Shown: one piece after another, positions 33,694 to 56,621 of the stretch | Layout of the letters: each line of letters begins with the position of its first letter | Position numbering within the stretch: position 1 is the stretch's first letter | NCBI RefSeq assembly: GCF_006345805.1 | Contig: NC_043000.1 | Span: 100,192,001 to 100,256,000, forward strand | Direction of reading: 5' to 3' | Origin: Octopus sinensis | Taxonomy: Eukaryota | DNA length: 64,000 bases | The notes under the pieces: model-generated | What the model was told of the DNA's origin: nothing | The model's database searches: none | Seen by the model: only the letters and a program-made list of their open reading frames with translations | Position numbers and translations under genes: made by a program

Positions 33694-33813
33694 ACCGTAC
33701 CCGGAGTTAGTGGTGAGATTAAAGAAATCAATGGGTTGATGGTCGATGTTCAAGATAATTGTGACCCGGGGAACAAAGACTCGTGCAGTCCAGGCTATTG
33801 TTGTGTCAAAGAG
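33694..33813 (+). CDS. Internal coding exon of a prokineticin/astakine-like secreted Cys-rich protein: TVPGVSGEIKEINGLMVDVQDNCDPGNKDSCSPGYCCVKE
   Basis: Pyrimidine-rich acceptor tttctttcgtctatttccag|, 120 nt open, donor GAG|gtaact (phase 0). Supplies Cys1-4 (C-X7-C-X4-CC) and a signal-peptidase-like site VSG|EI. Confidence 0.85.
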
Positions 33814-34014
33814 GTAACTGAAAACTTTTCTAATTACATTTTCTCACACATTCATGCACAGGCATAAGCACGCGCACGCACACAATGTATGTATGTATAT
33901 AAATATGCTTATATGCACTCCATCGACGAGTGTTCCAGTTGATCCAATGAACGGAATAGTCTTCTAGTAACATTAAAGTAAATGTGACTGAATACTCCAC
34001 AAACACAAGTACCC

Positions 34015-34228
34015 TTAATGAAGTTCTCAAGGAGATTCAGCGTGACACAGAATGTCATAAAGCTGGCCCTTTGAATTGTAGCTAATACTCATTTTTTGCC
34101 AACTGAGTGAACTGGAGTAACGTGAAATAAAATGTCTTGTTCAAGGACACAATGCGCCACCAGGAATCGAACTCACGACATTACGATCGTGAGCCGAATA
34201 CCCTAACCACCAAGCCACGCGCCTTCAC
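34015..34228 (-). mobile_element. tRNA-head SINE (CORE/Meta-like)
   Basis: Minus strand gaaggcgcgtggcttggtggttagggtattcggctcacgatcg...gagttcgattcc...tgtccttgaacaagaca. Confidence 0.8.
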
Positions 34229-34373
34229 ATGTAGATTTATTCTCCAACAGAAGCCCGTCTCTTTCATGTTTTAGATTACTGAATCGACAATCTAAAGCCT
34301 GAAAGAGACGAGTTTCTGTTAGAGCCCCACGAAATTGTAAGTCGCATGGCGCCGAATCAAACTGTTTAAATAG

Positions 34374-34436
<63 letters not shown>

Positions 34437-34439
34437 CCA

Positions 34440-35081
34440 GAAGCTGAATGCAGTTTTCATGAAGAAATCTCACCTCATCTTCTGGCAGTGAATGAAGCCA
34501 TTGAAAGTTACTTCCCAGGATTGGATGACCGCTGTACTGATGCATGGATCTGTAGACCCTTTTCTGCGAAGGACAGTGCCAACTGATGTTGCTGTGAAGG
34601 TAGAATTTCTTCAAACTCGTGAATATACTCCGTTGAAAGTCAATTTTTCTGAACAAGAGCTTCCGACATTTTGAGCGAAACTGAAGGACGACTAACATCT
34701 TCTTTCAATGTGTACACTGACCTTGCTGATCCAGTCGCCTTCGACCTATCGCTTAGGGCTGGATTCTCAATAATGATGGCCCTGAAAACGAAGTAGGCTT
34801 ATGATTGACGCCGATATGAGGTGTTGTCTATCAATCATTGCTCATCGCTTTGGATGTACTTAAGGCTGCAAAACAATATCAACCCTCCCACTAAGTGAAT
34901 GAGTAGGTTTTGTATGATGTTTAGTAGTTATTTATAACATTTTCTATAAACTAGAATCATATAGTTTTGACTTATCTCACCATTACGCAATGTTAATCAT
35001 TGCAAAATTTATTATAGGGGTCACGGTAATACCCTGGAGAGTCTCAGTGGGTAAGACGATGGAAAAGTTTAAGAACCACTG
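34440..35081 (+). mobile_element. hAT (Buster/Charlie, ZBED5/FAM200-like) transposase 3' remnant with right TIR
   Basis: NEAIESYFPGLDDRCTDAWICRPF; MMALKTK..DADMRCCLS..KQYQPSH*. Terminal aagtttaagaaccactg is the reverse complement of a CAGTGGTTCT-type TIR. Confidence 0.8.
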
Positions 35082-36394
35082 ACTTAGATGATAGGTTCCG
35101 TGAGCATTTATGAGTGACAATAACAATGCCCGGATTGATCTCGAACCCATACCTTGTCACTTTAACTTGTCTGGTCATTTTACTGTCCACCTCCCTGTAG
35201 CTGCAAGAAAAATCTCAAAATATCTTCTCTGCGATGAATGAATATTTGCCTCAACTTCCTATGATTTTTTTTTTCCCTTTTCCCAAGCTCACTTCAGAAG
35301 TCGCAATCATTCAATTCTTTTAATTACGAATATTCTATATGTACTATATGAATATATGTATATATGGATGGTTACATAAGCGTGAGTATATGTTCGCAGT
35401 GGTGTTTTGAGTATATATCTCTATATATGCATTTGTGCCTATCAACATATGTAAATGCGTATTCGCGTACACATGATCGCATTCCTTCTTGGTGCATCAG
35501 CTGCATTTGTATACATTTATGTGTGTGTGTGCGTGCGTGCGTGTGTACGTGCGTGTGTGTGTGTGTGTGCACGCGCGCGTATTCACAATCTCTTTTGCTA
35601 CATCTGGTTAGATATTTCATTTATTTAAAATTACGTTTCAAATATTACACTTTTATAGGATGAAAATGACAGATTGAAAGTTTGGACGAGCTCTCAAGAT
35701 TCTTTACGTTTGAACATTATTGCAAGTAATTTAAAATAACCAGCTGTTCTTGCAACTTTTCTATGGTTTAGACTTATCTATAAAATCTTTTGCGCATACT
35801 GGGCATTGTAGGGTTAAAAATATTCGTTAGCTGTCTTTCTGCTGAAGTAAATCTATTTACGGTTTCTCTTTGTTTCCCGATTGTCCGTCCTCTCTTTACT
35901 TGAAGACATAACCTTTTCTGTTCACCTTGTCCTTGTCATTGTTTAGTCTCATGTCAACTTTGGTGGAGCAGATTAATTATTAAAGACGTTCCAGATGTAA
36001 CCCTCTCGTCTGTTTTCTCTCTTTGCAAGGAACTCAGGATCATATCAGATAATGTGGGTTGTTCTAGGGCAGTGGGGTGTGGTTTGAAGGAGATTTGGCA
36101 GCTATTTCCAACAAATCGAGTAACCGCATAAAAAGTTCCCTCGCTGTTTATGTTTACCTTGTTTGAAACGCCCACACTTTCTACTTTCTACCAAATTCAT
36201 AACTTCTCCCGCTTTCATTCAAAGTCGATCTCGGCGGAATTTGAACTCAGAACGTAAAGATAGACGAAATACCGCTAAGCATTTTCAAACTCCTGATACT
36301 TTCACACTCCTCGTGGCCTCTTCCTTCATTCCTCATATGAACTTTAACACGCCTCCCTCAGTTCAACTCCATGGTTGCCATTTTCTAACCAAGA

Positions 36395-36950
36395 GTCCAC
36401 GTGTCACCGAGAATAATGAGTACAAGTTCTTGTGGGATTTTACAATCCAGTGTGATTCAGAGATTGATGATCGGAGACCAAACATCGTTTCGGTTTATAA
36501 AATGATGAAGGAAACCGAGATCATATTCTTTTCTACTCTAACCACAAGGCCCGAAATGTTGTGGGCCTTGTTGTGAAGGGGCCAGTCGATTAGATCGATC
36601 CCTGTACGCAAGTGGTACTTAATTTATCGACCTCGGAAGGATGAAAGGCAAAGTCGACCTCGGCAGAATTTGAACTCAGAACGTAAAGTCAGACGAAATA
36701 CGCTAAGCATATCGCCCGGCGTGCTAACGTTTCTGCTAGCTCGCCGCCTTCGAGATCATAGATATTGAATGTACGACTGGATGATAAAGAATTGGAAAAG
36801 ATTGAGAAGCATAAGGCACTAAAAGATGAGATTGTACGAATGTGTTTGTAGGAGTATTAGGAGCATTAACAACCAGGTTTTGAGAAATTTGTTGGAAAAA
36901 GTGGGAAGCACATGAGAGTAGAACATGCCTAGAAAACTGCTTTTATTGAG
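36395..36950 (+). mobile_element. R4/Dong-like RLE endonuclease fragment interrupted by a SINE
   Basis: ENNEYKFLWDFTIQCDSEIDDRRPNIV...KETEIIDI...EKIEKHKAL; the reading resumes after the SINE. Confidence 0.7.
36526..36750 (-). mobile_element. Full tRNA-derived SINE with a 10-bp TSD (cgagatcata)
   Basis: TSD at 36516-36525 and 36751-36760. Minus-strand head aaggcggcgagctagcagaaacgttagc. Confidence 0.9.
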
Positions 36951-37697
36951 GACAGCAGGTTGTTGCTCACTCTTACAGAATTAGCGGGAGCAAGTGAAAT
37001 CGAAAGCTCGGTGAGGGGAAATATATAAACTGCTATAACAATAATAATAATTACAGATGACGATTGCTGCTTCGTTACTAGGGGTGAGGCACGTTAACAT
37101 TACATGATTTCACTAGGTCAGACAAATATTTTCCAATGTGCCACACGCACACACACACACACACACACAAATACACACCCACGCGCTATCATCAAATCAC
37201 ACACTGCTACTGCCACCCGATGAAAGCCTGTATAACACTAGATCTCAAATAGACGTTTGACGTCAGTTGTCATTAAGAGATATCGTACACCACGTGAAAG
37301 AGAATTTTCGGTATTGAATGACATCGGTGAATTATTACAATATTTGATCAATTATAAATCGATTTCTCTTTGAACTGATTCAGACAGTCTCCTCATCCTT
37401 TTGTGATATGTCGTTCAATGTCTAATGAGATGCTATGCAAATCAGCAATAATAATACCAATATTGAAAACAACAGCATCAACATCAACGGTTGTGGCAAC
37501 AACAAAAGTTATAACGGTGACCACGACAGATATAAATGACAAGCGGATAATAACGACAGCAACAAGTGGCCTTTCAAATCCTCGTAATATTCCAAGATTC
37601 ATACATATATATTAATCAACCTATTCATTTCTATGTCTGATTCTTCACACATACACACATAATACACACACACAACAACAACAACAGCAACAACAAC

Positions 37698-37728
<31 letters not shown>

Positions 37729-37757
37729 TAATAATAATAATAATAATAATAATAATT

Positions 37758-38313
37758 ATGCCCTGATGCAGTACCAGGCAGTGGCTCTCATGGCTTCTGA
37801 TCTTAACTGATTGGAAGTTTTATCATGTACATTGTTTTGTCTTGGTATAAAAGATGGGCTACAGCAAATATTCTGCTCAATACCACAGATTTGCTTGTCA
37901 GTTGTTTGACCTTAACCAGTTGAGCATGTCCCTTAGTGGCTGACGATATGTGCATCTCTGATCACGAGCAGAAGTAGTGGGGGAGCATCATAGCCATGTG
38001 TTGAGAGGGATTCTTTGGGGTTTGAATAATTCACCTCTGGAAACATGGGTGGTTCTTTCAACATCCTTAAACAATCCTTATTCAGGGACCTTTTGAGCGG
38101 GATGGGCTACTCAACCTGAAGAAATTTCTAACTGGGCCCCACCTGCAAGGTCATGTGCTGTTTATCTTGATACGAGATCACCATGTCGCGCACATATGGT
38201 TGTGATGCATGTGCCTGGTGTACCTTTATCAGACGGGTAGTCATGATGGGTATATTGGGCTTCGTATATTTTACCCCAGTGTCACTTTGATGGCAAGCAC
38301 TGCTCTCTCACTC
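37758..38313. mobile_element. ~555-bp non-coding interspersed element embedded in (AAT)n
   Basis: Higher-GC unique block bounded on both sides by (AAT)n, with no ORF in the track. I recall it as a common octopus repeat (not verified). Confidence 0.5.
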
Positions 38314-38356
<43 letters not shown>

Positions 38357-38386
38357 GATATTATTATTAGTATTATTATTATTATT

Positions 38387-38424
<38 letters not shown>

Positions 38425-38592
38425 TATTATTATATGGATATTTGCATGTTTATATATGGGTGTATGTGTACGTGTATATGATGTTTCTGTGTGTTTATAT
38501 ATATATATATATATATATCAATCTATCTATATATAATATACACTCACACACAAAGTGATACAGTAAGATACATATACATGCTTATATGTATG

Positions 38593-38644
<52 letters not shown>

Positions 38645-38911
38645 ATATATATATACATACATATATATACGCACACACACACACATATATATACAAACAT
38701 ATATATGTATACATATATATACACATATATATACATTTATATATGTGTATGTACTTAACTTTGTGTGTGTGTGTATATTATATATATTTCGACAGTTTAG
38801 CATTTATGTGTTTACCTGTGTTCACACACACACACACACATACATACATACATACATACATACATACATACATACATACATACATACATACATACATACA
38901 TACATACATAC

Positions 38912-39720
38912 AAAAGTCTCTCAGAGGATACAAGACACTGGAAACATTGCGTGTCTGCAGCGGGAATTGAACGCAATATACAGGTGGGCTGAGGAAAATA
39001 ACATGCAGTCTAATGCCGGAAAATTCCAAACACTGCGCTACCAGCATGAGAAACTCAATGAAAAGCAGACAGGATGTACTAACCCAAGAGAGACTGCGAT
39101 TCATAAACCAAAATCAGTGCGCGAATTGGGCATCGACAAGCTGGCAACAAAATGCAGACAGTTGGCTGGATTGATCTTTCGAACTTTCAGAACGAGAGAA
39201 CAGGAAACCCTGATGGTCCATTTGTCCTCAGCCGTTTAAATTACAGCTCCCAGCTATGGTCACCACACAGTGTAAAATTAACGACGTAACTCGAAGCAAT
39301 CCAGTGAAGCTACACAAAGAAGATCATCTCAATGCGACATGTCAGTTTTTGGGAGAGACTTACTAAGTTAAGACTCTACTCCCTAGAACAAAGGCGGGAA
39401 AGATACGCAGTAATATATATCAGGAAAATCCTAGAACTGATACCAAACGTTGGCATTGTCAATTGCACAACCAACAGGACGGGGCGTCACTGCATAGTGC
39501 CAAACATCCCAATATTGCCACCAAGGTACAGAATCAGACACTGCAACAGCTCTTTAATATCCGCCCACAAAGCCTAAGAGACTTACATGGGATCGATGTA
39601 GGTGTCCTCAAAACAACTCCGGGTCCCCTTCTGTCAAGAGCCCCGGATGAATCTACCTCGCGGCAAGTAACGCAGATGAGAGCAGCAACATCAAACTCCC
39701 TCATTGACCAAGTGTAGCGA
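38912..39720 (+). mobile_element. CR1/L2-group LINE RT C-terminal fragment
   Basis: LQRELNAIYRWAEENNMQ.NAGKF; SVRELGI; YSSQLWSP; WERLTKLRLYSLEQRRERY. Confidence 0.8.
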
Positions 39721-40007
39721 AGCAAACGGTGATACCCAAGCATTGCCGCAGGTCTCGGACTGCAACTAGAAAAGGCATAAAAATCCATCCACCCATCCAT
39801 ACATACATATATACACACATACACACGCACACACACACACACACACGCATACACACAAACACACACACGCCCGCACACAAATAACCACACGGACAGACAC
39901 ACACACACACAAGCAGGCACGCACACACACACACACGCACACACAAACACACACACATATGCATATATATATATAAATATATATATATATTCGCATTGTG
40001 CATGTAT

Positions 40008-40079
<72 letters not shown>

Positions 40080-40199
40080 CAGATAGATAGACAGACATAC
40101 ACACACACGCCCGCACAGAAATAACTACACGGACAGACACACACACACAAGCAGGCACGCGCGCACACACACACACGCACGCACGCACGCGCACACACA

Positions 40200-40238
<39 letters not shown>

Positions 40239-40549
40239 TTATATTTATAAATAAGGACTTCATTATGTTTCTGGGAGATGACGACATAGATATATATATA
40301 TGCATCTATTCCCTTTATCAGCAGGCTGGTGGAAAGAAGCGGTTCAACATTTTCTATTTCACATCCACCTGCAGCTGCCATAAAGCAAAATATGAAGTAT
40401 ATTATATGCAAAGACGAAATACAAATTTTCAACACAAAATTCCCAAAGATTAAATCATCTACATCAAAGTTTTCTCTAAATTTGAATTTTAAATTAAAAT
40501 TTTAGAAATATCTTATTTTTAGAAATAATTTAATTTTAGAAATATCTTA

Positions 40550-40760
40550 TTTTTCACTTGTTTCAGTCTGCGGCCATACTGGAGTAGCGCCTTGAAGACT
40601 TTTAGTCGAATGAATAGACCTTTCCCCCAGTAATTATTATTTTTTTTTTCAAGCTTTTTCGGTCTATTTTACAGAACCGATAAGTTACGGGAACGTAAAC
40701 ACACGAACACCGGCTGTCAAGCGGTTACGGAGTGTGGTGACGAGCACAAACACAAAGACA
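40550..40760 (-). mobile_element. SINE 3' half
   Basis: Reverse complement of the family at 12020. Confidence 0.65.
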
Positions 40761-41267
40761 CATAGATACAATATATATATATTGAGAAAAAAAGTAAACT
40801 AAGTTGGCATCTCAACGACTGTAATAAACAAAATTCTTTGGACTGGAAAATTGTCAAGATCGTTCCCTTATGATAATGGTAAATCATTCTGCTCTCTTTG
40901 TACGGACGAACAATTTTTTATCCATTTTTCCAAACAAACACTTGTTAACACCTATAAACAAAGTGTTTACAGGTGTTTACATTGGAAAAAAACAATTTCA
41001 GCCATTTCAAATAATATCTGCTCCCTTTTACCTAATAACATCAGTAACTTTCACTTTATTAATTTCAATCCATACATCCCATTCGTTTCTTTAACATTTC
41101 TATCCATCTGTCATTCACCTTTCTATTTGGTTAGTCCTTCATTACTTCTTTATTTTCCTTTCTCTCTTTCCTCTCTTCCGCTCTCGTCTTATGACGTCAA
41201 ATTTCTTAACGGTTTTTAAAAGTTACTAGCGTTCTCTATCCACCTTTTGCTTTTTTATATATTATAA

Positions 41268-41780
41268 CTAGCAGTATCGCCCGGCGTAGCTCGGGTTTGT
41301 AAGGGAAATAACTATATAAGCATTTTTAGAGAGTTACTTCCCTTATAGATGCCAATTCGGGCTTTCTTAGCCATTTCTGTTTTGGTGTCTTCAAGCCATG
41401 AAGTCGTTGTTCTAAAAGAACGCTGGTCTCCTTGACAACGCTTTACGACGTTGATTTCCTTACACTCCCTTCCCCACAGCTTCACGAGGGAGGGAAGAAG
41501 GGGGAGAAGCAAACAGGTGCAGGTGTGACCATGGACGCCAACTCCGCCGCCATCGACACACGAAAAATTATGCATTAAAATGGAATAAAAAATGATGTTA
41601 AATTATTTTTTAAATCGTAGACTCATCGTAGACGCGCGCTAATAGCCAGACGGGCTCGATATTAATCACGACTATAAGATACCCGAATTTGGTTAAACTG
41701 CACCGCAAAATGTGGGAGTAGTTAGGAATCTAAATCGAAGGGGACAGACACTCACACAACTACAGTTTTATATATATAGA
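41268..41780 (-). mobile_element. Complete non-autonomous Helitron (513 bp)
   Basis: Minus strand: A|TC start (tctatatatataaaac), 3' hairpin cccg-agctacgc-cggg, 8-nt spacer, CTAG|T end; A/T insertion site without a TSD. Confidence 0.85.
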
Positions 41781-42733
41781 TAATTTCTTACATTTGTAAA
41801 AAAGGCTTTTTAATGAGCACTGTTATTTATAATCTCCTCTCTGATAAGATCGATACATTATTCCACATTATTTTTTCTCCCGGATTAATTTTAATGTATT
41901 CATCGAAACATATGTCGGTGATATAAATGATTAAAATAACATCTTGTGTGTTTGTCTCCATTTACCATTTGTCTTATAGTCACCAAAACACGTCTCACTT
42001 CTTCTTGGAATTATTACCCTTATACGTGTGGTTGCTAATATTTAAAAATGCGTATGTGACATTTGGCTACCCTGGTAACTATTTCTCCGGATCTTTCATT
42101 AAAAATTATATATATATATATATATATATTGATATATCTTGGCTGGTTTTTCAGTTCATGATATCTATATATACATATGTATATTGTACACTTATATGCA
42201 TGCATGTTTTTATGTATGTATCTATGTGTCCGTGAATGTCCATATCCATATATGTATTTAAGTAACTATGTATATCACAAGCTAGTTGTCATATTCCCTT
42301 TCAATGAAAGCAAAACTTCACATTGTAAACCTCACCTAGTAAAAACACTTACACGCGGACGTACGCATGCTCAGACACATTTACATATACACATACATTA
42401 CATATATAGAGAGAGGGGGGAGGCCAAAGAGAGAGGGGGAGAGAGAGAGTTATTAAGTCACTATAAATGGGGGTTGACTATGTCTAAGTTTTGCCACGCA
42501 AACTTAATAAAAATGGAAAAGTTTCAGAAAATATTTCGAGCGAGGAGAAATTTCTTTATGCTAGATGAGTTGAAAACTTTGGACCTAATTAGAGTCATAC
42601 AAACATACATACATACATACATACATACATACATACATACATACATACATACATACATACATACATACATACATACATACATACATACATACATACATAC
42701 GAACGTACGTACGTATGTACATATATGAATGCA

Positions 42734-42765
<32 letters not shown>

Positions 42766-42827
42766 CATACATACATACATACATACATACATACATGCAT
42801 ACCTGCATACATACATACATACATACA

Positions 42828-42861
<34 letters not shown>

Positions 42862-43482
42862 CATACATACAGACAGACAAACTGATTGACAGGTACGTAG
42901 GTGAGTCTACAGATATACCAATAGATACGCAGATAGAGATACATCAATAGATTTACCAACAAATTTGTAACTGAACTGAAATGAAATGAAAAGAAAGGAA
43001 AATAATCTCAATTGGACCGAGTTTTGGTGTTAGTTGGACCGCAAAGCGTATAGTTTGATTATATGTATATGAATCAGTTTTATCATTTTAATTCATATTT
43101 TATTTCCTTAAGCTATAAAGTACATCGTATCTGTGAAACATATCAAAAGAAGGTAAAATAAGCAATATCTTTTAAGTTCATTTCGGTTATATCTAAAAGT
43201 ACAGTTTTGATAAAATGGTGGTATTTCAAAAGAATTTTTTGAATATCTTCGCTTGTTTTTAAAGTATTAATGTTTTCAAATATACCGATTCGCACTGTGC
43301 AATTTTCACTAGTCTCGCTAGTAGTAGGTAATTTGCAGAGAAATGTGGTTTAATTATTAGATATTATGTATATATGACCCGTACTTATACTTGACACTTA
43401 AAGGTCATTAAAGATCATTTAAACTTAATCCTCATTTAAATTTGAAAGAAGTGGGAAGTCATGGTGGAAGGGGTATGCCAAA

Positions 43483-43541
<59 letters not shown>

Positions 43542-44042
43542 GTGTGTGTGTGTGTGTGTGTGTGCTGTTTACTATATAGATATGTGTATATGTAGTGCGT
43601 AAAGGGTTTTTTTTTAATTATTAGTATGGCGATTTGGCTGTGTACGTATTAGTAGTAGAAATTCGAAAATTTTATAGTAAAAAATAGTAGGAACGTCTAA
43701 AATAAAATATCAAACAAAACAGAATGAATCTAAGGTTGAAATGTTAAAACCGGAATCCCTGTATAAGTACTCTAAAAAAAAACAAGAATTGAAATTAAAC
43801 AAAAATAAAGTTAAATATAATTCCATGTACATGACCGAATATACATACATGCTGGCATATGCATTACTCCCCTGGTCATTTACAGATTTTATATTTACGC
43901 GTGCGCACATACACACACATAGACACACATACACATACACACGCATACACACACACCTGCACATGCACACACATACACCCCATCTCTTCTACTATGTTGT
44001 CTCCTCGACAATCTTACGTACAGCAGCACACTCACACTCATA

Positions 44043-45204
44043 CGAGATGGTATCAAAAAGTTCCCGGACTAGTTCTGTAGCACACCAACTGTTGGCAGCA
44101 CGCGGTCGCGTGCGCCATGTGACCTAGTAGTGACCTTCATAAGACAATGTGTCGAGTGACATCACTGTGTATGCTGCAGTCTGCGTTCTTGTTATGGACA
44201 AAAATCCAACAACAACATTTTGCGTTAAACTTGGGAAGTCTACTACAGAGACGTTGAGCATGCTTCAGCAAGCTTACAGCGACGAGGCAATGGGTCGTAC
44301 GCAATCTTTCGTGGCACGGGCGCTTCAAAAGCGGAAGAACGTCTCTGAAAGACGGTGAGCAATCTCGAAGACCCGTCACAAGAGTCACTCCCGGAAATGT
44401 GGAAGAAATTCATCAGATTTTGCATGAGGATCGTGGGAGGACAATCAGCGACATTGCTGATGTTGTTTCTGTCATATGGGTCCGTGCAGGCAAACCTAAC
44501 GTCTGAATTGAACATGTGGCGTGTTAAATTTGTCCCCCGCTTGCTGAGCAGAAACAGCATCACGTCGAAGTCTGTCAAGATCTCTGTCAGTGTGCCGCTG
44601 ATGACCCATCCTTCATGTTGGGGATCATCACCGGTGTCAAGAATTGGGTCTACGAGTACGACCCTGAGACAGAACACCAGTCGTCACAATGGAAGAGCCC
44701 TTAATCTCCACGACCGAAGAAGGCACGCCAGAACCGCAGCACAATCAAGAGCATGTTCATAGTTTGTTTTTACATCCGCGGTATTATGCATCGACAATTC
44801 GTCCCTCCAGGGCCAGACGATCAATCGAGAGTTCTACTGTGACGTTTTGAAGCGTTTGAGGGAGGGCATTCGGCGAAAACAACCGGATCTGTGAAGAGCG
44901 AAGAATTAGATTCTTCACAACGATTATGCACCCTGTCACCGAGCTCTCCTCACTCGTGAGTTTCTCGCCAAAAACAACATGGTGTTCGCCCTATTCCCCA
45001 AGATCAAAATACAGCTCAAAGGTCGCTGTTTTAACACCGTTGCCGATATCCAGAGCGAATCACAGAAGACCCTCGACTCACTTATGGAAAACGACTTCCA
45101 GGCCGGATTTCAAAAGTGGCAGGAACGTTGGGACCAGTGTATTGCTGCGCACGGTGACTATTTGGAAGATGGCTAGTCCGGGAACCTTTTGATACCCACA
45201 CACA
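44043..45204 (+). mobile_element. Near full-length mariner (DD34D-type) with a disabled transposase
   Basis: TIR ggtatcaaaa(a/g)gttcccggactag at both ends with flanking TA. Motifs FCVKLGKSTTET, EFYCDVLKRLR, LHNDYAPCH and FQKWQERWDQCIAAHGDYLE. Confidence 0.9.
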
Positions 45205-46467
45205 TACCGTGCTGACATACGCATGCTCATATAAATCTATCTTCTGCACACATACTCACGCATACATATTGCCATTCCTCGAGCGTCTTGTCTCCCTGAC
45301 ACATACACACATATTCATTTGCTCTCTCAAAGTCTATTGCTTTCTTTTTCCCTTTATTTTTTTCATCCACATACATACATTCACGCACGCGCACACATCC
45401 ACTCTTCTTTTGGCATATTCTTCTAATCCTTTCACTGCCCTTTCTAATCACTTATCTGTTAAAGAGGTTTCCTGTCTCTCTACCAATTTTTCTCGTCCAC
45501 GTGTTGTACCAAATCTTTCAAGTCACGTACTCGAACTAAACTATCATCGGCTGAATTTTCCAAAGTTTTGTTTCTTTGCGAGTGTTACCACTTTTACCAA
45601 CTTTGGATTCTCATGGCATTCTCATTTTCTTCCCGTCCATTATTAACGCCTTAAATTCTGTCACGTATTTATACATCTATCACTTGCCCTTCTATGTGCA
45701 ATTAATTTTCGTTTCTAAGCTGCTCACTGTACTATCAGTATTTCTGTCTTCCCGACTTTAGACTAGATGGGTACCTCTCCGGATTTTTCACTAGTGTTGC
45801 ATTTTTATTTACATATTTATTTAGTTGTTTATTTATTACCTTTTATCCGTATTTTATTATTTTTAATTTTCCTTCAATTTTTCTTTTAAATTTCTCTCAC
45901 TTCTCTCCCTGAATTCGCTTGTTCCTTTTTCATTCTTTCCCTTCTTTCTTCTTATTTTTCTCTTTCGTATTTATATGCTTTGGGTTCACCACTGTCACAT
46001 TCGTCTTGCCCTTTCATATGCCTCACTAATATTTTTCCCCTCTCAGAACTATATTTTTTTGTTTGACCAGTAATGCTTTGAACCCTTTTTCTCCTTTCCA
46101 TAACTTTCTTCCACATCATAGTAACTCACTTCCATACCCTTGCTCTTCTACTCCACCACATTTCACTCGCCTTCCTTTTTATTTCACACCCGCTCCCGCT
46201 CCTAAACTCTTATTTCCATGTTTTTCGTACGTATACTTAACGATTACTCTCACATACACCAATACACCATATCCCCACTAACCTACGTCACTATACTTCC
46301 GTACATACACACATACATATTCACATAAACAAAACCACATGCACAGCTCCCCACCACACACACATCGTTTTTATACTTTGCAGAATTGTGTTGAAACAGA
46401 AATTGCTGTATATTGGGTAGGTAATTTTTTCCTAATAGAAACATATACACTTTTATACTTCGTACTT

Positions 46468-46492
46468 TCTTCTTCTTCTTCTTCTTCTTCTA

Positions 46493-46561
<69 letters not shown>

Positions 46562-46601
46562 ACTACTACTACTACTACTACTACTATTATTATTATTAGT
46601 T

Positions 46602-46634
<33 letters not shown>

Positions 46635-47100
46635 ATGGTGGTGGTGGTGGTGGTGGTGGTGGTGATGGTCATGGTGATGGTAGTGGTGGTAGTGAGGGGT
46701 GATGGTGATGGTGACGGTGGTGGTAATGGTAATAGTGGTGCTGATGGTTGTGTGGTGGTGTTGTTGTCAGTGACGATGATGGTGATGATGATGATGATGA
46801 TGATGATGCAGGTGTTGATATTGTTGTTGGCGGTGATAGTGGTGATGGTGATGTTGTTGGTGATGGAGTTGATGTTCGTGACGTTGTTGTTGGTGATTGT
46901 GGTGGTTGTGATGATAATAGTGATGGTGGTGGCATTGCTGATGATGATGATGATGATTTTGCTGATGTTGGTGGTGGTTGCCGTTGGTGTTGTTTTTACT
47001 GGTATTGTGATTGCTGGTGGCGGTGGAATGATGGTGGTACTATTGTTGTTAGTGTTGTTGTTGTATGTGGTGCTATTGGTGGTGCTGCTGTTGTTGTCAG
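46468..47100. repeat. Compound trinucleotide microsatellite (TTC/CTA/CTG/GTA/GGT/GAT/GTT)
   Basis: Seen directly; source of the poly-V/T/S ORFs. Confidence 0.9.
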
Positions 47101-47329
47101 CAAACCTTATTATCAGTAGCATTCTATCCATGATCATTCCGTCTTTCACTCTGTGTTAATGTATTTAAAACTAGATTATCCAATTTGTCATTCCTTTCTA
47201 TTAAGATGGTTGGATGTGATTAAGAGAAAGTGAAAGAAAAATACCCAGAAAATGATTTATTCATTAATTTTGGCAAAAAGTGAATCGATAATCACCTGAT
47301 GAACATAATGATCACAATAATCCTCTAAT

Positions 47330-47760
47330 AATAATTAATAATCACACTGTCAAAGTGGTGTATGAGTTCTGATGTCATGGAGGTATTATTACAAATCAAT
47401 GTGATGGTGGCAAAGAGATAAAAAGAGGAATTGCCATAACAAAATCTGCTGTAATCTTTTTAAACCGCATTTGGAAAAGAAAACAAAATCTAAAGACGAA
47501 GTTGATGTAGCTGTACACTTTGATATTTCGGATTGTAATGCTTGGATCTGAAAGCTGATGGGAGAAGATAGATAGCTTCTATGTTTGATGTTATAGAAAA
47601 AATGCTAAGGATTAGCTGAATTGAAAACAAAGAACAAATTTGTGTGTGTTGAAAAACAGTGAGATTGAGTTGAATTCTGTAAAAGAAATGAACAATAAAA
47701 CCTTATGTATTTTGAATTTGTCGTAAGAACTCATAGTCGACAAAAATTATTGGTCAGAGG
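47330..47760 (+). mobile_element. Decayed RTE-clade LINE post-RT region
   Basis: DGGKEIKRGIAITKSA...IWKR...CYRKMLRIS. Confidence 0.6.
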
Positions 47761-47823
47761 AAAAGTCCCTGGGAAAATGCCGTAAGAAAGCACTAGAGAA
47801 AAAAACAGAGTGTATAGATCAGA

Positions 47824-48055
47824 AAGGCGGCGAGCTGGCAGAAACGTTTACACGCCGGGCGACCTGCGTAGCCGTATTTCGTCTGTCGTTACGTACCGAG
47901 TTCAAATTCTGCCGAGGTCGACTTTGCCTTTCATCCTTTCGGGGTCGATAAATTAAGTACCAGTTACGCACTGGGGTCGATGTAATCGACTTAATCCCTT
48001 TGTCTGTCCTTGTTTGTCCTCTCTGTGTTTAGCCCCTTGTGGGTAGTAAAGAAAT
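47824..48055 (+). mobile_element. Full tRNA-derived SINE (aaggcggcgagctggcagaa family)
   Basis: A box tggcagaaacgtt, B box gagttcaaattc, tail gtagtaaagaaata. Confidence 0.9.
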
Positions 48056-48980
48056 ATATATAGATCAGTCACGGGCAAACTGTGGCTCGTAGAGCTTTCT
48101 GAGTGGCACACCTAACAAAAAATTATCTTCAACTTTTTATAGTAATCTGAGGATTTTTATAGTAATATAGTAATATAGTACTATAGTAAGATAGTAATAT
48201 AGGATTTTTATAGTAATCTGAGGATTAGCTGTCTCATGCGGCCCTCTTTTCGATAAAGGCTGCCCGTGTCTGATATACATGAATAGAGAAAAATCGTCAG
48301 ACGAACCACCCTCACATTCAAAGAGATGGAAATTGTAGATGATGATGACGATGCTAATTCTGGCTGGTTAGCTCTGTTAAAAATTTCTGTGTAGCTAGGA
48401 AAAAGACAACAGTATATATGTGTATGTATGAATATGTTCACATACGCATTATATATGTATAATAGTAGTTTGACTCAGTTCCATGTGACTTAAAGTTTGG
48501 TAGGTGCGAAGGACATGTCCTCCTTAATAGCTATCTGATGGAATAAACGTGTTCTACGCGCCCACGAAACTTTAAAGTTATTTGAAGATGAGTCAAACAG
48601 TTGTTAAAGATATATATGTATCTCCTACCAAATGTGTTGAATGCCAAAAAAACAAACAAACAAAAGAAAGCAGCATGCTACACATTTCATGAAACATACA
48701 TACATACATACATACATACATACATACATACATACATACATACATACACAAGTACGATTCAACACTGCATATCTAAGTATGCCGGGTAGCCGACGGCGAA
48801 ATGGAGACATTGTATAACTGAGGCGATGCATCGAGCTTGGTCGCTCTACAGCCTGTCCGCCCGCCACAGGATTGTTTGACATGAGCTGAACTTAGAATAT
48901 ATATATCATTATCATCATCATTATCATTGTCATCATAATCATCATCACCATCATCATCATCATCATCATCATCGTCGTCG

Positions 48981-49026
<46 letters not shown>

Positions 49027-49103
49027 TATCACCACCACCACCACCACCACCACCACCATCAACAACAGCAACAACAATATTAACTCATGCAATGCATTAA
49101 CAT

Positions 49104-49337
49104 GTGGAGGCGCGTGGCTTAGTGGTTAGGGTGTCAGCATCATGATCGTAAGATTGTGGTTTCGATTCCTGGACCGGGCGACGCGTTGTGTTCTTGAGCA
49201 AAACACTTCATTTCACGTTGCTCCAGTCCACTCAGCTGGCAAAAATGGGTAGCGCTGCGATGGACTGGCGTCCCGTCCAGCTGGGAAACCGGGCCCATGG
49301 GCTTGGCTAGGCTTTAAAAGGGCGCATTTATTTTTTT
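49104..49337 (+). mobile_element. tRNA-head SINE (CORE/Meta-like) with a 13-bp TSD aatgcattaacat
   Basis: TSD at 49091-49103 and 49338-49350; A and B boxes present. Confidence 0.9.
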
Positions 49338-50023
49338 AATGCATTAACATAACCGTTGGCAGCAACAGTAGTATACAAAATAATACATAAAACAGAATAA
49401 TATGAGCAAAACGCTACTATCGTCACTATCACCCCTTCCACCACCACGGCCGCCGCCGTCGCCATCATCACTTCCACCACCGCCACCACCACCAATAATG
49501 ATCATTTCTATTCTAGACACAAGGCTCGAAATTTTGGGGGTGGAGAGCAGACGATTAGATCGACCTCAGTACGCAACTGGTACTTAATTTATCGATTTCC
49601 GAAAGGTTGAAAGGCAAAGTCGACCTCGGCGGAATTTAAATTCAACCACCACCAATGATAATAAACATCACCATTACAAGCTCTGTGAATTCGTTCGACT
49701 TGCTAGAAATAGCAAACAAATCTCACTCAAATCGAACCCTACTGTCTAAAGAGGAGACAGTAAGGCCGGACCAATGCTACTTTCACTATCAGCATAGCCA
49801 CCACCACCACCTCACAGTCACAGCTACAATCACCCCCCCACCCCCACCACCGCCGCCGCCGCCGCCGCCACAGTACCACTATAATCACTGCCACAATCAC
49901 TATAACCACTACCACAACCACAACCACAACCATTAGCAGTGCCGACACCACCACCATCATTGCTATTAACAGCTGAAGATGTAGCTTTCATGAATAACAG
50001 CGACAACAGCAATGCTCTGAGAC

Positions 50024-50444
50024 ATACCTATTTCTTTACTACCCACAAGGGGCCAAACACAGAGAGGACAAACAAGGACAGACAAACTGTTTAATCGATT
50101 ATATCGACCCCAGTGTGTAACTGGTACTTATTTAATCGACCCCGAAAGGATGAAAGGCAAAGTCGACCTCGGCGGAATTTGAACTCAGAACGTAGCGGCA
50201 GACAAAATACCTATTTCTTTATTACCCACAATGGGCTAAACATAGAGGGGACAAACATGGACAGACATAGGTATTAAGTCGATTATATTGACCCCAGAGC
50301 TTAACTGGTACTTAATTTATCGACCCCGAAATGATGAAAGGCAAAGTCGACCTCGGTGGAATTTGAACTCAGAACGTAGTGGCAGACGAAATACTGCTAA
50401 GCATTTCGCCCGGCGTGCTAGCGATTCTGCCAGCTCGCCGCCTT
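50024..50444 (-). mobile_element. Head-to-tail SINE dimer (full unit plus a 5'-truncated unit)
   Basis: The second unit begins at the internal ggtattt near 50205-50211. Confidence 0.85.
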
Positions 50445-50618
50445 AGACTCATACCGACTGATCCAGTCGGTCAGCGAACATTAAAACGGAAGTCTTTTGT
50501 ATTAACATTTGCACACACGTGTAAATACATGTATGCTTGGAATCATGTAAGCATTCTCTGACTGGTGTTTACACTGTTGTATGAAAATTCAGTCGAATCA
50601 TGCAGACGGCTGCTACTA

Positions 50619-51530
50619 CGAGGTGGTATCAAAAAGTACCCGGACCAGTTTTGTAGCGCGCCAACAGATAGTAACTCACTGTTGCGTGCGTAGTGAGAGC
50701 TAGCAGTGACCTTCATGAAAGCGCTGTGATTACTTCGCGAGTTGCGAAATTTGTGTTTTTGGGATCACGTGCATGCTGTAGTCTGCGATTTTTTGTTTAT
50801 GGACAGGAAGTTGGAACAAAGAGCCAACGTAAAATTTTGCGTTAAACTTGGGAAGTCTGCTACAGAGACATTGGGCATGCTATGGCAAGTTTACAGCGAC
50901 GAGGCAATGGATCGTACGCAATTTCGAGTGGCACGGGCGCTTTAAAGGGCACGACAGAGCCGCAGCTCAATCAGGAGCATGCTCATCGTCTTTGTTGATG
51001 TCTGCGGTATTATGCACCGATAATTCGTTCCCCGGGGCCAGACCGTCAGTTGAGAGTTCGTTGCCCAGGACAAGACCGTCAGTTGAGAGTTCGTTCCCCA
51101 GGGCAAGACCGTCAGTTGAGAGTTCTGCAGCGACGTTTTGATTTGAGGGAAGACATTCGACGAAAGCAATCGGATCTGTGGAGTGCGAAGAATTGCACCC
51201 TGTCACCGAGCTCTCCTCACTCGTGAGTTTCTCGCCAAATAGTACCGCTTCCGTACCCATCCTATTCACCAGATATAACATCTGCAAACTTCCGTCTATT
51301 CCTCAAGATGAAAATGCAGCTCAAATGTTGCCGTTTTAACACCGTTGTCGAGATCAAGATCGAATCGCAGAAGGTCCTCGACTCGCTTACGGAAAACGAC
51401 TTCTAGGCTGGATTCCAAAAGTGGCAGGAACGCTGGAACCAGTGTATTGCTGCGCAAAGTGACTATTCGGAAGGAAATGATGTTAAAACTTACGTGAATA
51501 ATTTATATTAAACATAATTAGTCTGGGTAC
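50619..51530 (+). mobile_element. Second, internally deleted copy of the same mariner family
   Basis: TA-cgaggtggtatcaaaaagtacccggac left TIR; RKLEQRANVKFCVKLGKSATET; right TIR truncated. Confidence 0.85.
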
Positions 51531-51569
51531 CAGAATGTCCACAAGAAATATTTCAGAAGACTGGATACT

Positions 51570-51960
51570 CTAGAAACATATTCTAGAAACATATTGACCG
51601 AGTCCAAGAAAACCTGTGCGATCAGCAAGTTGTTAGCTTAAAAATTTCAAAATTAAGCGTCCGTCGCGTTTTGAGGCACAGTCATTAGAAATGTTACATT
51701 CCAAGAACAGTCTTAGCTCTCAATGAAGATGACCCGAACTGAAAAGTAGAATTTTGTGAGCAGTTCTTGGAAAGATGTTTAGAAGATACACGCTTTCCAA
51801 CAAAGAGTGTTTGCAGTGATGAGGCTACGATGAAATTACATGGCTCAATTAACAACTTCCACAGTTGCATCTACTGCAGATCTGGAAATCAGCATATTAC
51901 GAAGGAACATCGTGTTAATTTCATCAGGAGTTATAGTATGGTGCAGCTTATCAAAAAGAT
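51570..51960 (+). mobile_element. IS630-Tc1-mariner transposase fragment (DUF4817/rosa-like)
   Basis: LNEDDPN*KVEFCEQFL...CSDEATMKLHGSINNFHSCIY. Confidence 0.65.
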
Positions 51961-52059
51961 TAATATGACGGTTATCTTCAAGTCTTCGGGAAACGTATCC
52001 ATTCATAGTTTTTTTTTTTTTGTATGGTGAGCATTTCACATTAAAAGTCTTTGAGGTAT

Positions 52060-52555
52060 GTTAGCTCAGCTGTTTTGGGGTTGTATGTAAGTTCATCAGA
52101 AAGAGAGTATTTCCTGAGGAGCTCACTGTCGACACGTAGTATGTTGTTCTCTACAATTTTCAGCACATGGTCTGTATATTTATTTTTGCTGCTTTTGTTT
52201 AGTAAGTACTGTCTGAGAGAGGCTATACGACATTCAAATGCTGTCTATACTAATCTCAAGCTTCTGCTTCCTTCAACTCTTCATAAGTAGAGCCTATTGA
52301 TGATACTGTTTCTGTGGAAATTTCAAGTTGATGTCAAGATTTTGCGTAATTTAATATCTAAGGAGTGAATTTCGTCTACAGACCAGTTAAGTGTCCTAAA
52401 TGTTGGGATCAGCACTGGTATTACAAATGCATTGTGGGATATTCTCTGTTGTAAGAGTAGAGTTCCGACTGCCATATTTTCCGAATTCCGGTGAGATATT
52501 CTCGAGTCACAGCACCTTCGTATAACGTTTTTATCAGCGCCAAGGTATTTTTATC
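52060..52555 (-). mobile_element. R4/Dong-like LINE post-RT fragment
   Basis: EYLTGIRKIWQSELYSYN; NAFVIPVL; LDIKLRKILT; RLYL..EGSRSL. Confidence 0.7.
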
Positions 52556-52592
52556 ATTCTTATGTATGTATGTATGTATGTATGTATGTATG

Positions 52593-52623
<31 letters not shown>

Positions 52624-52710
52624 GAATGAATGTATGTATGAATGCATGCATACATGTATGTATGTATTTATGTATGTATGTATTTATGCATATGTATATA
52701 TGTATGTATG

Positions 52711-52744
<34 letters not shown>

Positions 52745-53215
52745 TGTATGTATGTATGTATGTATGTACGGATGGATGGATGGATGGATGGATGGAATGG
52801 ATGGGGAAATAGATGGAAGAACGGATAAATGGATGGATCGGAATTAACTGATTTCAACGGTGAGTATTGAAATGTTTAACAAAGCAAGCTACCTAATCAT
52901 TGACTTAGATTGTAAGGAGATGAACAATCCACTGACAAGCAACCCATTCTCGTAAGTCTCATGAAAAAAAGTACGTGCCTTTGACCGTGACAAGGTTAGA
53001 CCTTTCATTTAGATGTAAAATCCATCTCTACGATCTCCAAGCCATTTCCGTTTTTTCGGTTTCAGTCAGAAGGGTTCGTTTGACCCAAGCCTGTAGTAAA
53101 AAGACACCCGGTTAAAATGTCACGCAATGAGACCGAACTCGGGACCTCGCGATTGCGAAGCGAACTTGTGAGCTTCTTATCAAATCAACCATGACGCTTC
53201 TTTTGTCTCTCTCTC

Positions 53216-53287
<72 letters not shown>

Positions 53288-53791
53288 ACACTTTCGTTTA
53301 TGCTTAAATGCACGCAAACACTCCCGTACATGCGTACACATATATAGACCCATACATATAAATACATTTTCAGACAAAGGGGAGAAAGTGAGTGACAGAG
53401 AGAAAGGAAGACCTCGATTAACCTAAAAATCTACACCATGCTGTATTTCCTGCTAATTCAAAAGATTCTTTGTTTTCTACGTAATTTATTTCCTAAAACA
53501 TTGGCATCAATATCAAAGAAGACGCCAGAAATCTTAACTAATAATTAAATCTAATATTAAAGTTTAAATTAGCTTAATGAATATGATTTTATTAAATTAT
53601 ATCCCACCAATGCCATGACCACCTCCATTGCCGCGACCAGCCACCTACTATCAACATTACAATAGACTGAAATACATGAATATAGATCGTAGTTAATTCA
53701 TAAATTTTCACCATATAAACTATGCAGTATACATATACATACATGTGTGTGTGTGTGTGTGCGTCCATGACTCTAAGATGTCGTTACATTT

Positions 53792-53827
<36 letters not shown>

Positions 53828-53924
53828 CGGGAAGCTTTATGAAAATAAACAAAAGACGAAGGCAGGTGGAAGACAAACGAACAATTGTATTAGTATGGCG
53901 CTCAGGAAATATAAATAAAACAAG

Positions 53925-53962
53925 TCTTTAACGTTTCGAGCCTACGCTCTTCAACAGAAAGA
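53925..53962 (-). ncRNA. Minimal type-I hammerhead-like motif (one core substitution) in a (TA)n-flanked repeat
   Basis: ucuuu-CUGUUGA-a-gagc(guag)gcuc-GAAAC-GU-U-aaaga: stems I and II pair, and stem III is the palindrome ACGU. Confidence 0.5.
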
Positions 53963-54401
53963 TACACAGAGAGAGAAAAACACAGAAAGAAGGAGAGAAA
54001 AAAAATGCGTGCAGTAGCTAACGAAGTCTGGGGAGATTAATTCTCTTCTAGTGTCTTATAATTTAACACACTCACCGATAAAATTTTCACTCATTTACTT
54101 ATTTAGAGGAAATTTTATCGGTGAGTGTGTCAAATAATAAGGCACTAAAAGAGAATGACTCTCCCCAGATACAACATAATATACTTTAATACACGCACTC
54201 ACATAATGAATCTTGCAAACTAAGATATATATATATGCATGTATGTATGTATGTATGTATGTATGTATTATGTATGTATGTATGTATGTATGTAAGTATG
54301 TATGTATGTATATATATATATTATATATATATATATGTATATATATGTGTATATATATACATATATACATACATACATACATACATATATATATATAATA
54401 T

Positions 54402-54446
<45 letters not shown>

Positions 54447-54544
54447 AATCCCAAAAAGAAGAACAAACTAAAAAAACAACAATAACGCGAGGTCGTGATA
54501 CAGGTAAAGTATTAGAAGAAAGCTAAGGGAAGGAAAGAAAGATG

Positions 54545-54580
54545 GCTTAACGTTTCGAGCAAACGCTCTTCTTCTGAAAC
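54545..54580 (-). ncRNA. Second minimal hammerhead-like motif (one core substitution)
   Basis: guuu-CAGAAGA-a-gagc(guuu)gcuc-GAAAC-GU-U-aagc. Confidence 0.4.
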
Positions 54581-55667
54581 AGAGGAAAATCCAATAGAAA
54601 GGAAGACAGAGGGAGAAAATCACCAACGATTCACATGTTACATTTTGATATATATATATATATATATATACCAACGCATGAAACTCTTGGCCCTTGAGTC
54701 ACTCTGTTGTTTCTGTTAAGTATTAATAAAATATGTGTGTGTGTGTGCATAAATGTATGTGTACAAAGGAAGGAAAGAACACTCAGCACATTGTGAGTAG
54801 AATTTATACTTGTAGGTTAAAAAAATAGAACGGCGTTGCAGGCTATGCCTGTCTGAGAAAGCAATCCACAGTGTTCCTTTCTGAGAAATCGGAAGCAAAT
54901 TTAAATTACCGTGACAGATGGACATTTCTACAACGTCATTTTCAAGCGATTGACTCTGAAAATAATGCTAGACAAAACCATGAAGAAAATCCTTTGCTAA
55001 CGAAAATAACTATCGGCTGTCTTGCTTCCATTCTATTATTTTAATGTTATATTCTTATAATGTCATTACCTTCTGGTTAGTCTCTGTATTGAGTATACTA
55101 TCAATGAGAGTGAAACATACTAATAAACAAAAAAGAACTTACGTTTCAAGTTGCATGCGGCTAAAGTCTCATTCATATTAGACTCCCGAATGACTAAAGA
55201 CGTGGTTTGCTGGTCGATGAAAGTCCAAGTAAAGGACATTTTGTCAGCAACTCTTTATTTACAAATACATATACATAGATTCATACATGAATACACACTC
55301 GTTGGTTTTAACACACATGTATGCATGATGTGAGTTCAAGTCTCAAACGTCACCTTCGATTTTTTCTATCCAAAGGGGTTTTTTAACCCAACATTTACAC
55401 GCTACTATCAATAACTTTTTCTGCTTCGAGTTTCACCGTTTTCAAAAGAATTATTTCACGCTCTCTGGAAGTTTCTAAACTTGGAAAGATTATTGATACA
55501 TAATGGAGGTGTACTTTCATTGTATCCGTTTTAAAATTTTGCATGTTACTTTTAATTGATAATCTAAATCAGACTGATAGTATCAATATTATGTGATAAC
55601 ATATACGGTATATAATTCTCACAATAACAAAAAATACAATGCATCTTGTTTTTCTATTTCTTATTAG

Positions 55668-55892
55668 GTTATTGCTTATAGGCCTCAGTACAAAGGGCAG
55701 AAAGCAGCATATAAGCAAGCTTGCCGACGCATGCGCAGAGAAGGTGAATTCTGCATGCCTGAAGATGCACTTCATATTTGTCCATGCAATAAAGGGTTTG
55801 AATGTCAAGCAGAAGAAGAAATGGACTATGGCCACTGTCGAAGAATCAAGAAACCAGAAAATGATGCTGATGTTCTCGGATTTCGAGTGTGA
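55668..55892 (+). CDS. Last coding exon of the prokineticin/astakine-like protein: VIAYRPQYKGQKAAYKQACRRMRREGEFCMPEDALHICPCNKGFECQAEEEMDYGHCRRIKKPENDADVLGFRV*
   Basis: Acceptor ttgtttttctatttcttattag|, phase 0 matching the exon-2 donor. Supplies Cys5-10 (C-X9-C-X8-CPC-X5-C-X10-C). REGEFC resembles prokineticin GREGEEC. TGA at 55890-55892. Confidence 0.88.
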   Translation, partial: VIAYRPQYKGQKAAYKQACRRMRREGEFCMPEDALHICPCNKGFECQAEEEMDYGHCRRIKKPENDADVLGFRV

Positions 55893-55992
55893 TTTTATGA
55901 AATGATGTTTTTTTTCTTTTTCATTCCATGTTTTTTCAAAAAATATTTTGTATTCTTTTCTATTACAACTTTTTATCTTTCTTTATATTTGA

Positions 55993-55998
55993 AATAAA
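55993..55998 (+). promoter_or_regulatory. Candidate polyadenylation signal AATAAA
   Basis: Lies 100 nt after the stop codon; AT-rich context makes a chance match possible. Confidence 0.35.
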
Positions 55999-56164
55999 AC
56001 TATTTATCTAGTAGTACCTAATATATTTCTGCAGGATTATGGAAGAAAAGAAAATTAAAACTTGAAAATTGTTTTATATTTAATCCCTCAAACAATTATC
56101 TTCTCCCATCGTTACCTTTAATAGACCTATATGTATGTGTGTATACTCTCTCTCGTTTAATATA

Positions 56165-56229
<65 letters not shown>

Positions 56230-56249
56230 TGTATGTATGTATATGTATG

Positions 56250-56305
<56 letters not shown>

Positions 56306-56519
56306 TACAGATACATACATATAAAACAAATACGCATGTATATCTAATATACAGTAATAGATAAGTGAAATAGTATGATATATGTGTGTATGCATACAAG
56401 CATACACACATACCTACCTACCTATATTCATACCCTAAATACATGTATATTATATATAACTTAAATGTATAATAAATATACATTTATGCGTTATGTAATT
56501 TATGCAGATGTAACATGTA

Positions 56520-56621
<102 letters not shown>

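Follow-up and report, generated by a model that had tools for sequence, protein, structure and literature searches.

Prokineticin, Bv8 and MIT1 (the AVIT family, PF06607) are single secreted domains with ten cysteines in the order C-C-CC-C-C-CxC-C-C. The astakines of crayfish and shrimp (haematopoietic cytokines of invertebrates), oyster CgAstakine and Cragi-prokineticins 1–5 are also secreted, have ten cysteines, lack the AVIT N-terminus and come from protostomes, including molluscs. Such prokineticin/astakine-like peptides have been recorded throughout the molluscs (PMC8398477, PMC6425005), and the receptor of astakines and invertebrate prokineticin-domain proteins is unknown or is not a G protein-coupled receptor (GPCR) (PMC8398477, PMC8557429). 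Here we describe two coding exons in a 64,000-nt stretch of the Octopus sinensis genome (NCBI RefSeq assembly GCF_006345805.1, contig NC_043000.1, positions 100,192,001 to 100,256,000 of the forward strand; ‘the window’ below). We read them as the final pair of coding exons in a real, annotated gene, LOC115211073, whose product would be a secreted protein of colipase fold from a mollusc-wide family, probably an extracellular ligand; we give this joint reading a probability of roughly 0.7.

A preliminary description of this DNA had joined the two exons in phase 0 over a GT-AG intron of 21,854 nt, and the coordinates, when re-read, agree (Table 1). The donor GAG|GTAACT stands at 33814 and the acceptor AG at 55666–55667, behind a long pyrimidine tract. 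The joined peptide of 114 aa has the cysteine spacing given earlier, C-x7-C-x4-CC-x21-C-x9-C-x8-C-P-C-x5-C-x10-C. The first of the two exons carries an N-terminal beta-hairpin arm and Cys1–Cys4; the last one carries the basic C4–C5 loop, Cys5–Cys10, an RRIKK motif and a 12-residue tail. The notion of a two-exon gene did not survive: a pyrimidine tract and AG precede 33694 and there is no start codon, which leaves a gene with at least three coding exons. Because position 33694 follows an acceptor and the peptide lacks both a start codon and a signal peptide, the two segments represent the 3′ part of a larger gene.

The list of open reading frames (ORFs), made with a default cut-off of 60 aa, had been said to show the first exon only, and this is the case. 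That exon lies within the ORF 33643–33867, while the second is covered just by a wrong-frame ORF of 88 aa (55639–55905). With the cut-off lowered to 20 aa the correct frame of the last exon appears from an internal ATG (55731–55892).

Table 1. Features of the LOC115211073 segment in the window (positions counted from the first letter of the window)
Feature	Position	Strand	Description
3′ splice site of upstream intron	33670..33693	+	pyrimidine tract ...tttcgtctatttccAG, read in the sequence
Internal coding exon	33694..33813	+	120 nt, 40 codons, TVPGVSGEIKEINGLMVDVQDNCDPGNKDSCSPGYCCVKE
Phase-0 GT-AG intron	33814..55667	+	21,854 nt; sits three codons past the CC doublet
Last coding exon	55668..55892	+	222 nt (74 codons) plus TGA; tblastn 100%, E 1e-47
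Cephalopod-specific C-terminal extension	55839..55889	+	from alignments; 17 residues past Cys10
Putative 3′ untranslated region (UTR)	55893..56020	+	AATAAA at 55993–55998, 101 nt past the stop; UTR end inferred

The gene had been called hidden, yet it is present in RefSeq and ENA annotation as LOC115211073. A protein search led to a cluster of annotated cephalopod proteins, all named uncharacterized or hypothetical: isoforms X1 (156 aa) and X2 (142 aa) of O. sinensis, O. vulgaris CAI9721189-91, O. bimaculoides LOC106876164 and a protein of Argonauta hians. The annotated proteins of O. sinensis and O. vulgaris match the joined peptide at 100% identity, and they match the peptide of the exon 33694–33813 equally well when it is taken separately (XP_029635822/23 and CAI9721189-91). 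Orthologues, which the preliminary description had proposed to look for across cephalopods, are present in O. bimaculoides, Argonauta and Sepia esculenta. A literature search on the locus and the protein accessions returned no paper mentioning either, and we found no publication describing a cephalopod member of this family.

The annotated gene covers 198 kb of the O. sinensis genome and 212 kb of that of O. vulgaris, and its isoforms vary only 5′ of the T at 33694; all annotated models (X1, X2 and a third one from O. vulgaris) part ways exactly before this nucleotide. Of the alternative 5′ coding exons, one specifies MSNFCLLLLGVLVFHIQ and another, kept in Argonauta, specifies ...WVSVWLELLLYSNLILACHPQRQ. 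Read by eye, both leaders appear to be signal-peptide-like hydrophobic segments. A search of the window for the signal-peptide exons of these three models found none; three alternative first coding exons (proteins P0003, P0004 and P0005) are annotated beyond it, upstream of position 1. Argonauta retains the X1-type leader, and Sepia has a loosely conserved version of it. Given a gene of ∼200 kb, the intron or introns 5′ of 33694 are longer than the window. An exact look-up of isoform X2 among assembled contigs gave no record.

Evidence of expression comes from cuttlefish. The orthologous cluster P0002 (145 aa) is 76% identical over the mature part and has as its source only ∼950-nt contigs found in 36 blocks of assembled sequencing runs. 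The contig behind it is a spliced transcript that includes both UTRs, and CCVKE|VIAYRP reads continuously across its junction. Three of the runs, SRR25097172, SRR25114243 and SRR19578104, are Sepia esculenta larval or juvenile RNA-seq (PMC10571815, PMC10442824, PMC9538352). Since these contigs cross VKE|VIAYRP, the orthologue is expressed in cuttlefish and spliced there at the same place; the junction proposed for octopus is thus contiguous in mRNA of a relative. In 94 aligned codons of Octopus and Sepia the proportion of nonsynonymous differences (pN) is 0.077 and that of synonymous differences (pS) 0.925, with 52 of the 67 nucleotide differences at third codon positions. Both exons are under strong purifying selection. 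Identity to annotated proteins, the Sepia junction and the third-position bias together put the reality of the gene far beyond chance.

To define the family more broadly, we built a hidden Markov model (HMM) from four cephalopod mature sequences and scored it against 1.84 billion representative proteins. This search yielded 18 proteins at E<1e-3; in a further profile search and in cluster look-ups, every named member was a mollusc. Gastropods are represented by Haliotis, Patella, Gigantopelta, Aplysia, Lymnaea, Physella, Littorina, Nucella, Babylonia and Bradybaena, and bivalves by Mizuhopecten, Ruditapes, Dreissena, Mya and Solemya. With the proteins of octopus and Sepia as queries, word-indexed searches for homologues returned only the two cephalopod clusters. 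Octopuses also have a paralogue (LOC115214763 in O. sinensis, LOC106870902 in O. bimaculoides; P0009/P0032) on another chromosome, 51% identical and with the same cysteine spacing. The paralogue is strongly acidic, with an isoelectric point of 4.4; that of the orthologue under study is 5.7 in Octopus and 9.1 in Sepia. The paralogous gene, too, is longer than 100 kb.

Family proteins are 95–156 aa long, and nearly all full-length members have a hydrophobic N-terminus. The ten cysteines are invariant, with nearly constant spacing (7,4,0,19-21,9,8,1,5,8-12), and the motifs CCVKE, G-E-x-C, CPC-x-x-G-L-x-C and G-H-C recur. A segment preceding Cys1, [IV]-[ND]-G-x-L-V-[DE]-[IV]-x-D-[ND]-C, is common to many members. 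The octopus protein has the whole signature: the leader, the cysteine spacing, CCVKE and G-H-C, and the phase-0 intron three codons past CC. The N-terminal arm, the C4–C5 loop of 19–21 residues and the C6–C7 loop of 8 had been regarded as peculiarities of the octopus protein; all three occur in 25 of 25 family members and, being common to cephalopods, gastropods and bivalves, are family signatures. Database labels fit the superfamily assignment given below: in UniProt the octopus paralogue and the scallop member are each a ‘Prokineticin domain-containing protein’, and in NCBI two bivalve members are ‘venom protein 164-like’. One protein of 271 aa (P0024) has the family domain at its C-terminus behind a long unrelated N-terminal part and is probably a mis-merged gene model.

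The intron, too, is conserved. Haliotis (L011 1001-21054) and Dreissena (L012 1001-3342) both have a GT-AG intron in phase 0, placed exactly three codons past CC. The homologous introns at this one site measure 854 nt in Haliotis and 1,112 nt in Dreissena; with 21,854 nt, the octopus intron is 20- to 25-fold expanded. The position differs from that in human PROK genes, where the intron follows Cys6; in octopus it falls in the C4–C5 loop. The first intron of Haliotis is also long (∼18.8 kb) and interrupts the signal peptide. Protein calls on three environmental contigs (P0018, P0039 and P0040, from ENA/JGI) appear to cross the conserved intron without a break behind CCVKE, with the family sequence continuing at GIAYIPEATG; they look like mollusc DNA in environmental assemblies subjected to prokaryote-style gene calling.

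Placement of the family among described proteins required profile methods. In the Pfam scan the joined peptide gave no Prokineticin match at E≤10; its one match, to Lustrin_cystein, is at chance level. Membership in Pfam Prokineticin (PF06607) proper, which the preliminary description implied, does not hold, as the gathering score of 21.6 bits is not reached: the strongest match of any relative has 13.9 bits (E 0.069), although it extends along the entire domain (profile positions 29–89 of 97). Other sub-threshold Pfam matches of relatives are to MIT_LIKE_ACTX, Colipase_C and a Dkk C-subdomain. With a single sequence, phmmer against PDB found nothing. When the family profile was compared with all PDB sequences, the six strongest matches were the second cysteine-rich domain (CRD2) of Dkk2 (E 0.002), MIT1, Bv8 and three Dkk1 chains, and matches at E≤1 were limited to Dkk2, MIT1, Bv8 and Dkk1. 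Alignment of the family profile by hhalign with an arachnid ‘venom protein 164’-like sequence, taken from PMC9881743, gave E 8.9e-5 and a probability of 60%, with C1–C9 in register. The sequence evidence for the superfamily is thus consistent but weak.

The structural model points the same way. An AlphaFold2 (AF2) model computed from a 25-sequence alignment has a predicted local distance difference test score (pLDDT) of 85.4 and a predicted template modelling score (pTM) of 0.69, and shows an N-terminal hairpin and beta-fingers; the hairpin strands are predicted at model residues 2–6 and 9–13 with pLDDT 88–92. A first run from a 4-sequence alignment (pLDDT 60, meaningless Foldseek matches) was discarded. 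The best Foldseek matches in PDB are colipase 1lpb_A (probability 1.00, template modelling (TM) score 0.51) and MIT1 1imt (probability 1.00, TM 0.58), followed by more colipase chains and an MIT-like spider toxin; the top five are 1lpb_A, 1imt, 1lpa_A, 2n8k and 1eth_B (probability 0.82–1.00). In MIT1 the disulfides connect C1-C4, C2-C5, C3-C7, C6-C9 and C8-C10. The superfamily proposed in the preliminary description is thereby upheld, with a predicted structure closest to colipase and MIT1 and profile matches in PDB to Dkk, MIT1 and Bv8. Judged from sequence and model, the protein belongs to a diverged molluscan subfamily of the prokineticin/astakine/Dkk-CRD2/colipase-fold superfamily, outside Pfam Prokineticin as now defined.

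With prokineticin, Bv8 and MIT1 the octopus protein shares C2-x4-CC, C5-x9-C6 with G-E-x-C, CPC and C8-x5-C9, in addition to the MIT1-like fold (TM 0.58). Unlike them, the mollusc family has at least 16 residues of beta-hairpin before Cys1 and no AVITGA, the hexapeptide that in the AVIT family comes immediately after the signal peptide, 6 residues ahead of Cys1. As had been claimed for the octopus loops, C4–C5 has 21 residues (19–21 in the family) versus 11 in the MIT1 and Bv8 rows of the alignment, and C6–C7 has 8 versus 17. The mature N-terminus is TVPGVSGEIKEINGLMVDVQDN-C, which bears out the reported lack of an AVIT N-terminus; no family member has AVIT. As far as the sequence can tell, AVIT-dependent activation of GPCRs of the prokineticin receptor (PKR) type is excluded, and protostomes are without PKR orthologues (PMC8398477, PMC8557429).

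As regards astakines, the N-terminus of isoform X2 and of most relatives resembles a signal peptide and AVIT is absent; a prokineticin domain is recognizable only at the superfamily level. The scallop ‘prokineticin’ of PMC8398477, XP_021370383, is not the scallop member of the mollusc family, XP_021347731. Because the two differ, the mollusc family probably forms a paralogous clade, a placement that comes from comparing these accessions.

The Dickkopf proteins offer the strongest alternative, in which the octopus protein would be a stand-alone Dkk-CRD2-like domain tuning Wnt signalling through binding to LRP5/6 or Kremen. The Dkk2 C-terminal domain is the top PDB sequence match, Dkk1 chains match as well, and CRD2 has a colipase fold; moreover, the motif C-[KR]-P-[LV]-x-x-x-G-[EQ]-x-C ... 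C-x-C-x-x-G-L-x-C is common with Dkk2, and Dkk genes do exist in protostomes (PMC6425005). Dkk proteins, however, have an additional N-terminal domain, CRD1, whereas the octopus family has a single ten-cysteine domain in proteins of 95–156 aa. Loop lengths also differ (C6–C7 has 8 residues here and 17 in Dkk2), and Dkk chains are absent from the top 50 Foldseek matches, which colipase and MIT1 lead. We regard a Dkk-type role as unlikely.

A second alternative, that the protein is a salivary-gland venom component, an MIT-like toxin directed against prey, draws on the fold common to MIT1 and MIT-like spider toxins and on the automatic name ‘venom protein 164-like’ of bivalve relatives. C1–C9 stand in register with arachnid ‘venom protein 164’ (the MIT-like atracotoxins, PF17556) in the hhalign alignment, which has a 12-residue gap in the C4–C5 loop of the arachnid protein and a 9-residue insertion in its C6–C7 loop. 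The arachnid protein comes close to Pfam thresholds (MIT_LIKE_ACTX 26.8 of 27.5, Prokineticin 20.5 of 21.6), and the mollusc family does not. The family is present in non-venomous bivalves and grazing gastropods. Selection is very strongly purifying, with an identical core in Octopus and Sepia, unlike in fast-evolving toxins. The window holds no tandem paralogues, and the gene is expressed in whole cuttlefish larvae. A venom function is thus very unlikely.

Still less probable is a colipase-like cofactor of the digestive gland, or a protein acting at lipid interfaces, even though pancreatic colipase, with which the octopus protein would share five disulfides and a three-finger beta architecture, tops the Foldseek matches. 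Weak Colipase_C matches in three relatives and the oyster prokineticin-like transcripts, found mainly in the digestive gland (PMC8398477), would fit such a role. Yet these Colipase_C matches span ∼15 residues around CPC, the window protein itself has no Colipase match in Pfam and sequence similarity to colipase is not significant. The loops of the octopus family are charged and basic and lack the hydrophobic finger tips, and the shared fold does not imply a lipase partner. Finally, a chance juxtaposition of two cysteine-rich ORF fragments, or a pseudogene, as the want of a start codon and signal peptide in the window could suggest, is effectively refuted by independent annotation in four cephalopod genomes, the spliced Sepia mRNA, a pN far below pS and an intron site kept in three mollusc classes.

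Several points weigh against the reading that we prefer, a secreted colipase-fold ligand of a mollusc family. The E-values to solved structures are marginal (0.002–0.9), the hhalign probability is just 60% and neither the window protein nor any relative attains the gathering score of a Pfam family. The top single sequence match is Dkk2 and not a prokineticin, so that either Dkk CRD2 or the prokineticin/astakine branch may be the nearest sister. The fold is a predicted one. The transcripts that could be traced come from whole Sepia larvae or juveniles. As to a ligand role, protostome prokineticin-like proteins are without a known receptor (PMC8557429), none having been established (PMC8398477).

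If the protein is such a ligand, its biogenesis may be outlined as follows. The alternative upstream exons beyond the window would supply a signal peptide, and a product of ∼110 residues would be secreted, consisting of a short N-terminal beta-hairpin and then a five-disulfide domain of the colipase/MIT1 type. By analogy with prokineticins, astakines and Dkk CRD2, it would act extracellularly, as an astakine-like cytokine or a ligand of the peptide-hormone type. The C4–C5 loop, VKEVIAYRPQYKGQKAAYK, together with RMRREGEFCMPED, forms a stretch that is identical in Octopus and Sepia and strongly basic, and is therefore a likely binding surface. The ligand could bind its cell-surface partner via VKEVIAYRPQYKGQKAAYK and the adjacent RRMRREGEF loop, and would not work through the vertebrate-type AVIT/PKR mechanism.

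The cephalopod proteins also differ from the rest of the family at the C-terminus: non-cephalopod members stop 1–4 residues past Cys10. In the cephalopod extension RR[IV]KK is conserved between Octopus and Sepia, while the tail behind it differs (PENDADVLGFRV versus SSNKSTKMGVGI); the tail has pLDDT <50 at model residues 98–107. One may speculate that RR[IV]KK is a convertase (dibasic) processing site, or else part of a disordered tail.

The 21,854-nt intron contains microsatellites and degenerate repeat ORFs only. Long microsatellites built from the tetranucleotides CATA, TATG and ATAT occupy 42596–42879, 52561–52794, 54225–54443 and 56160–56780, and a 184-bp unit is present twice in tandem at 50024–50394; these repeats lie inside and just past the intron. 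They account for the many spurious Cys/Tyr/Ile-rich ORFs in the ORF list. Three ORF fragments, 3660–4052 (+), 36163–36576 (+) and 38586–39239 (+), resemble decayed retroelements (e.g. ...LWDLPVHTDKIIKANKPDIIIKD... and ...FLWDFTIQCDSEIDDRRPNIVSV...), but had no Pfam match at E≤0.1. A Pfam scan of longer ORFs in and around the intron identified no family, and an Rfam scan of the window had no match.

The gene model was already public, as were mollusc prokineticin/astakine-like proteins (PMC6425005, PMC8398477). What is new is a fold and superfamily assignment for ‘uncharacterized’ mollusc proteins that Pfam models miss, including two cephalopod paralogues, together with a signature usable in annotation, made up of the cysteine spacing, two motifs (CCVKE and GHC) and the shared position of the intron. 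Whether the family, marked by its N-terminal beta-hairpin and basic C4–C5 loop, amounts to a functionally distinct class of colipase-fold ligand with its own receptor, and not just another astakine paralogue, we consider doubtful. With a core identical in octopus and cuttlefish, the strongly conserved cephalopod member is a reasonable bait for receptor deorphanisation; in other respects the family makes an incremental addition to a known superfamily. If there is such a distinct ligand class, it may be part of the missing receptor–ligand logic for the ‘prokineticin-like’ peptides of protostomes, or else a single-domain LRP/Wnt modulator.

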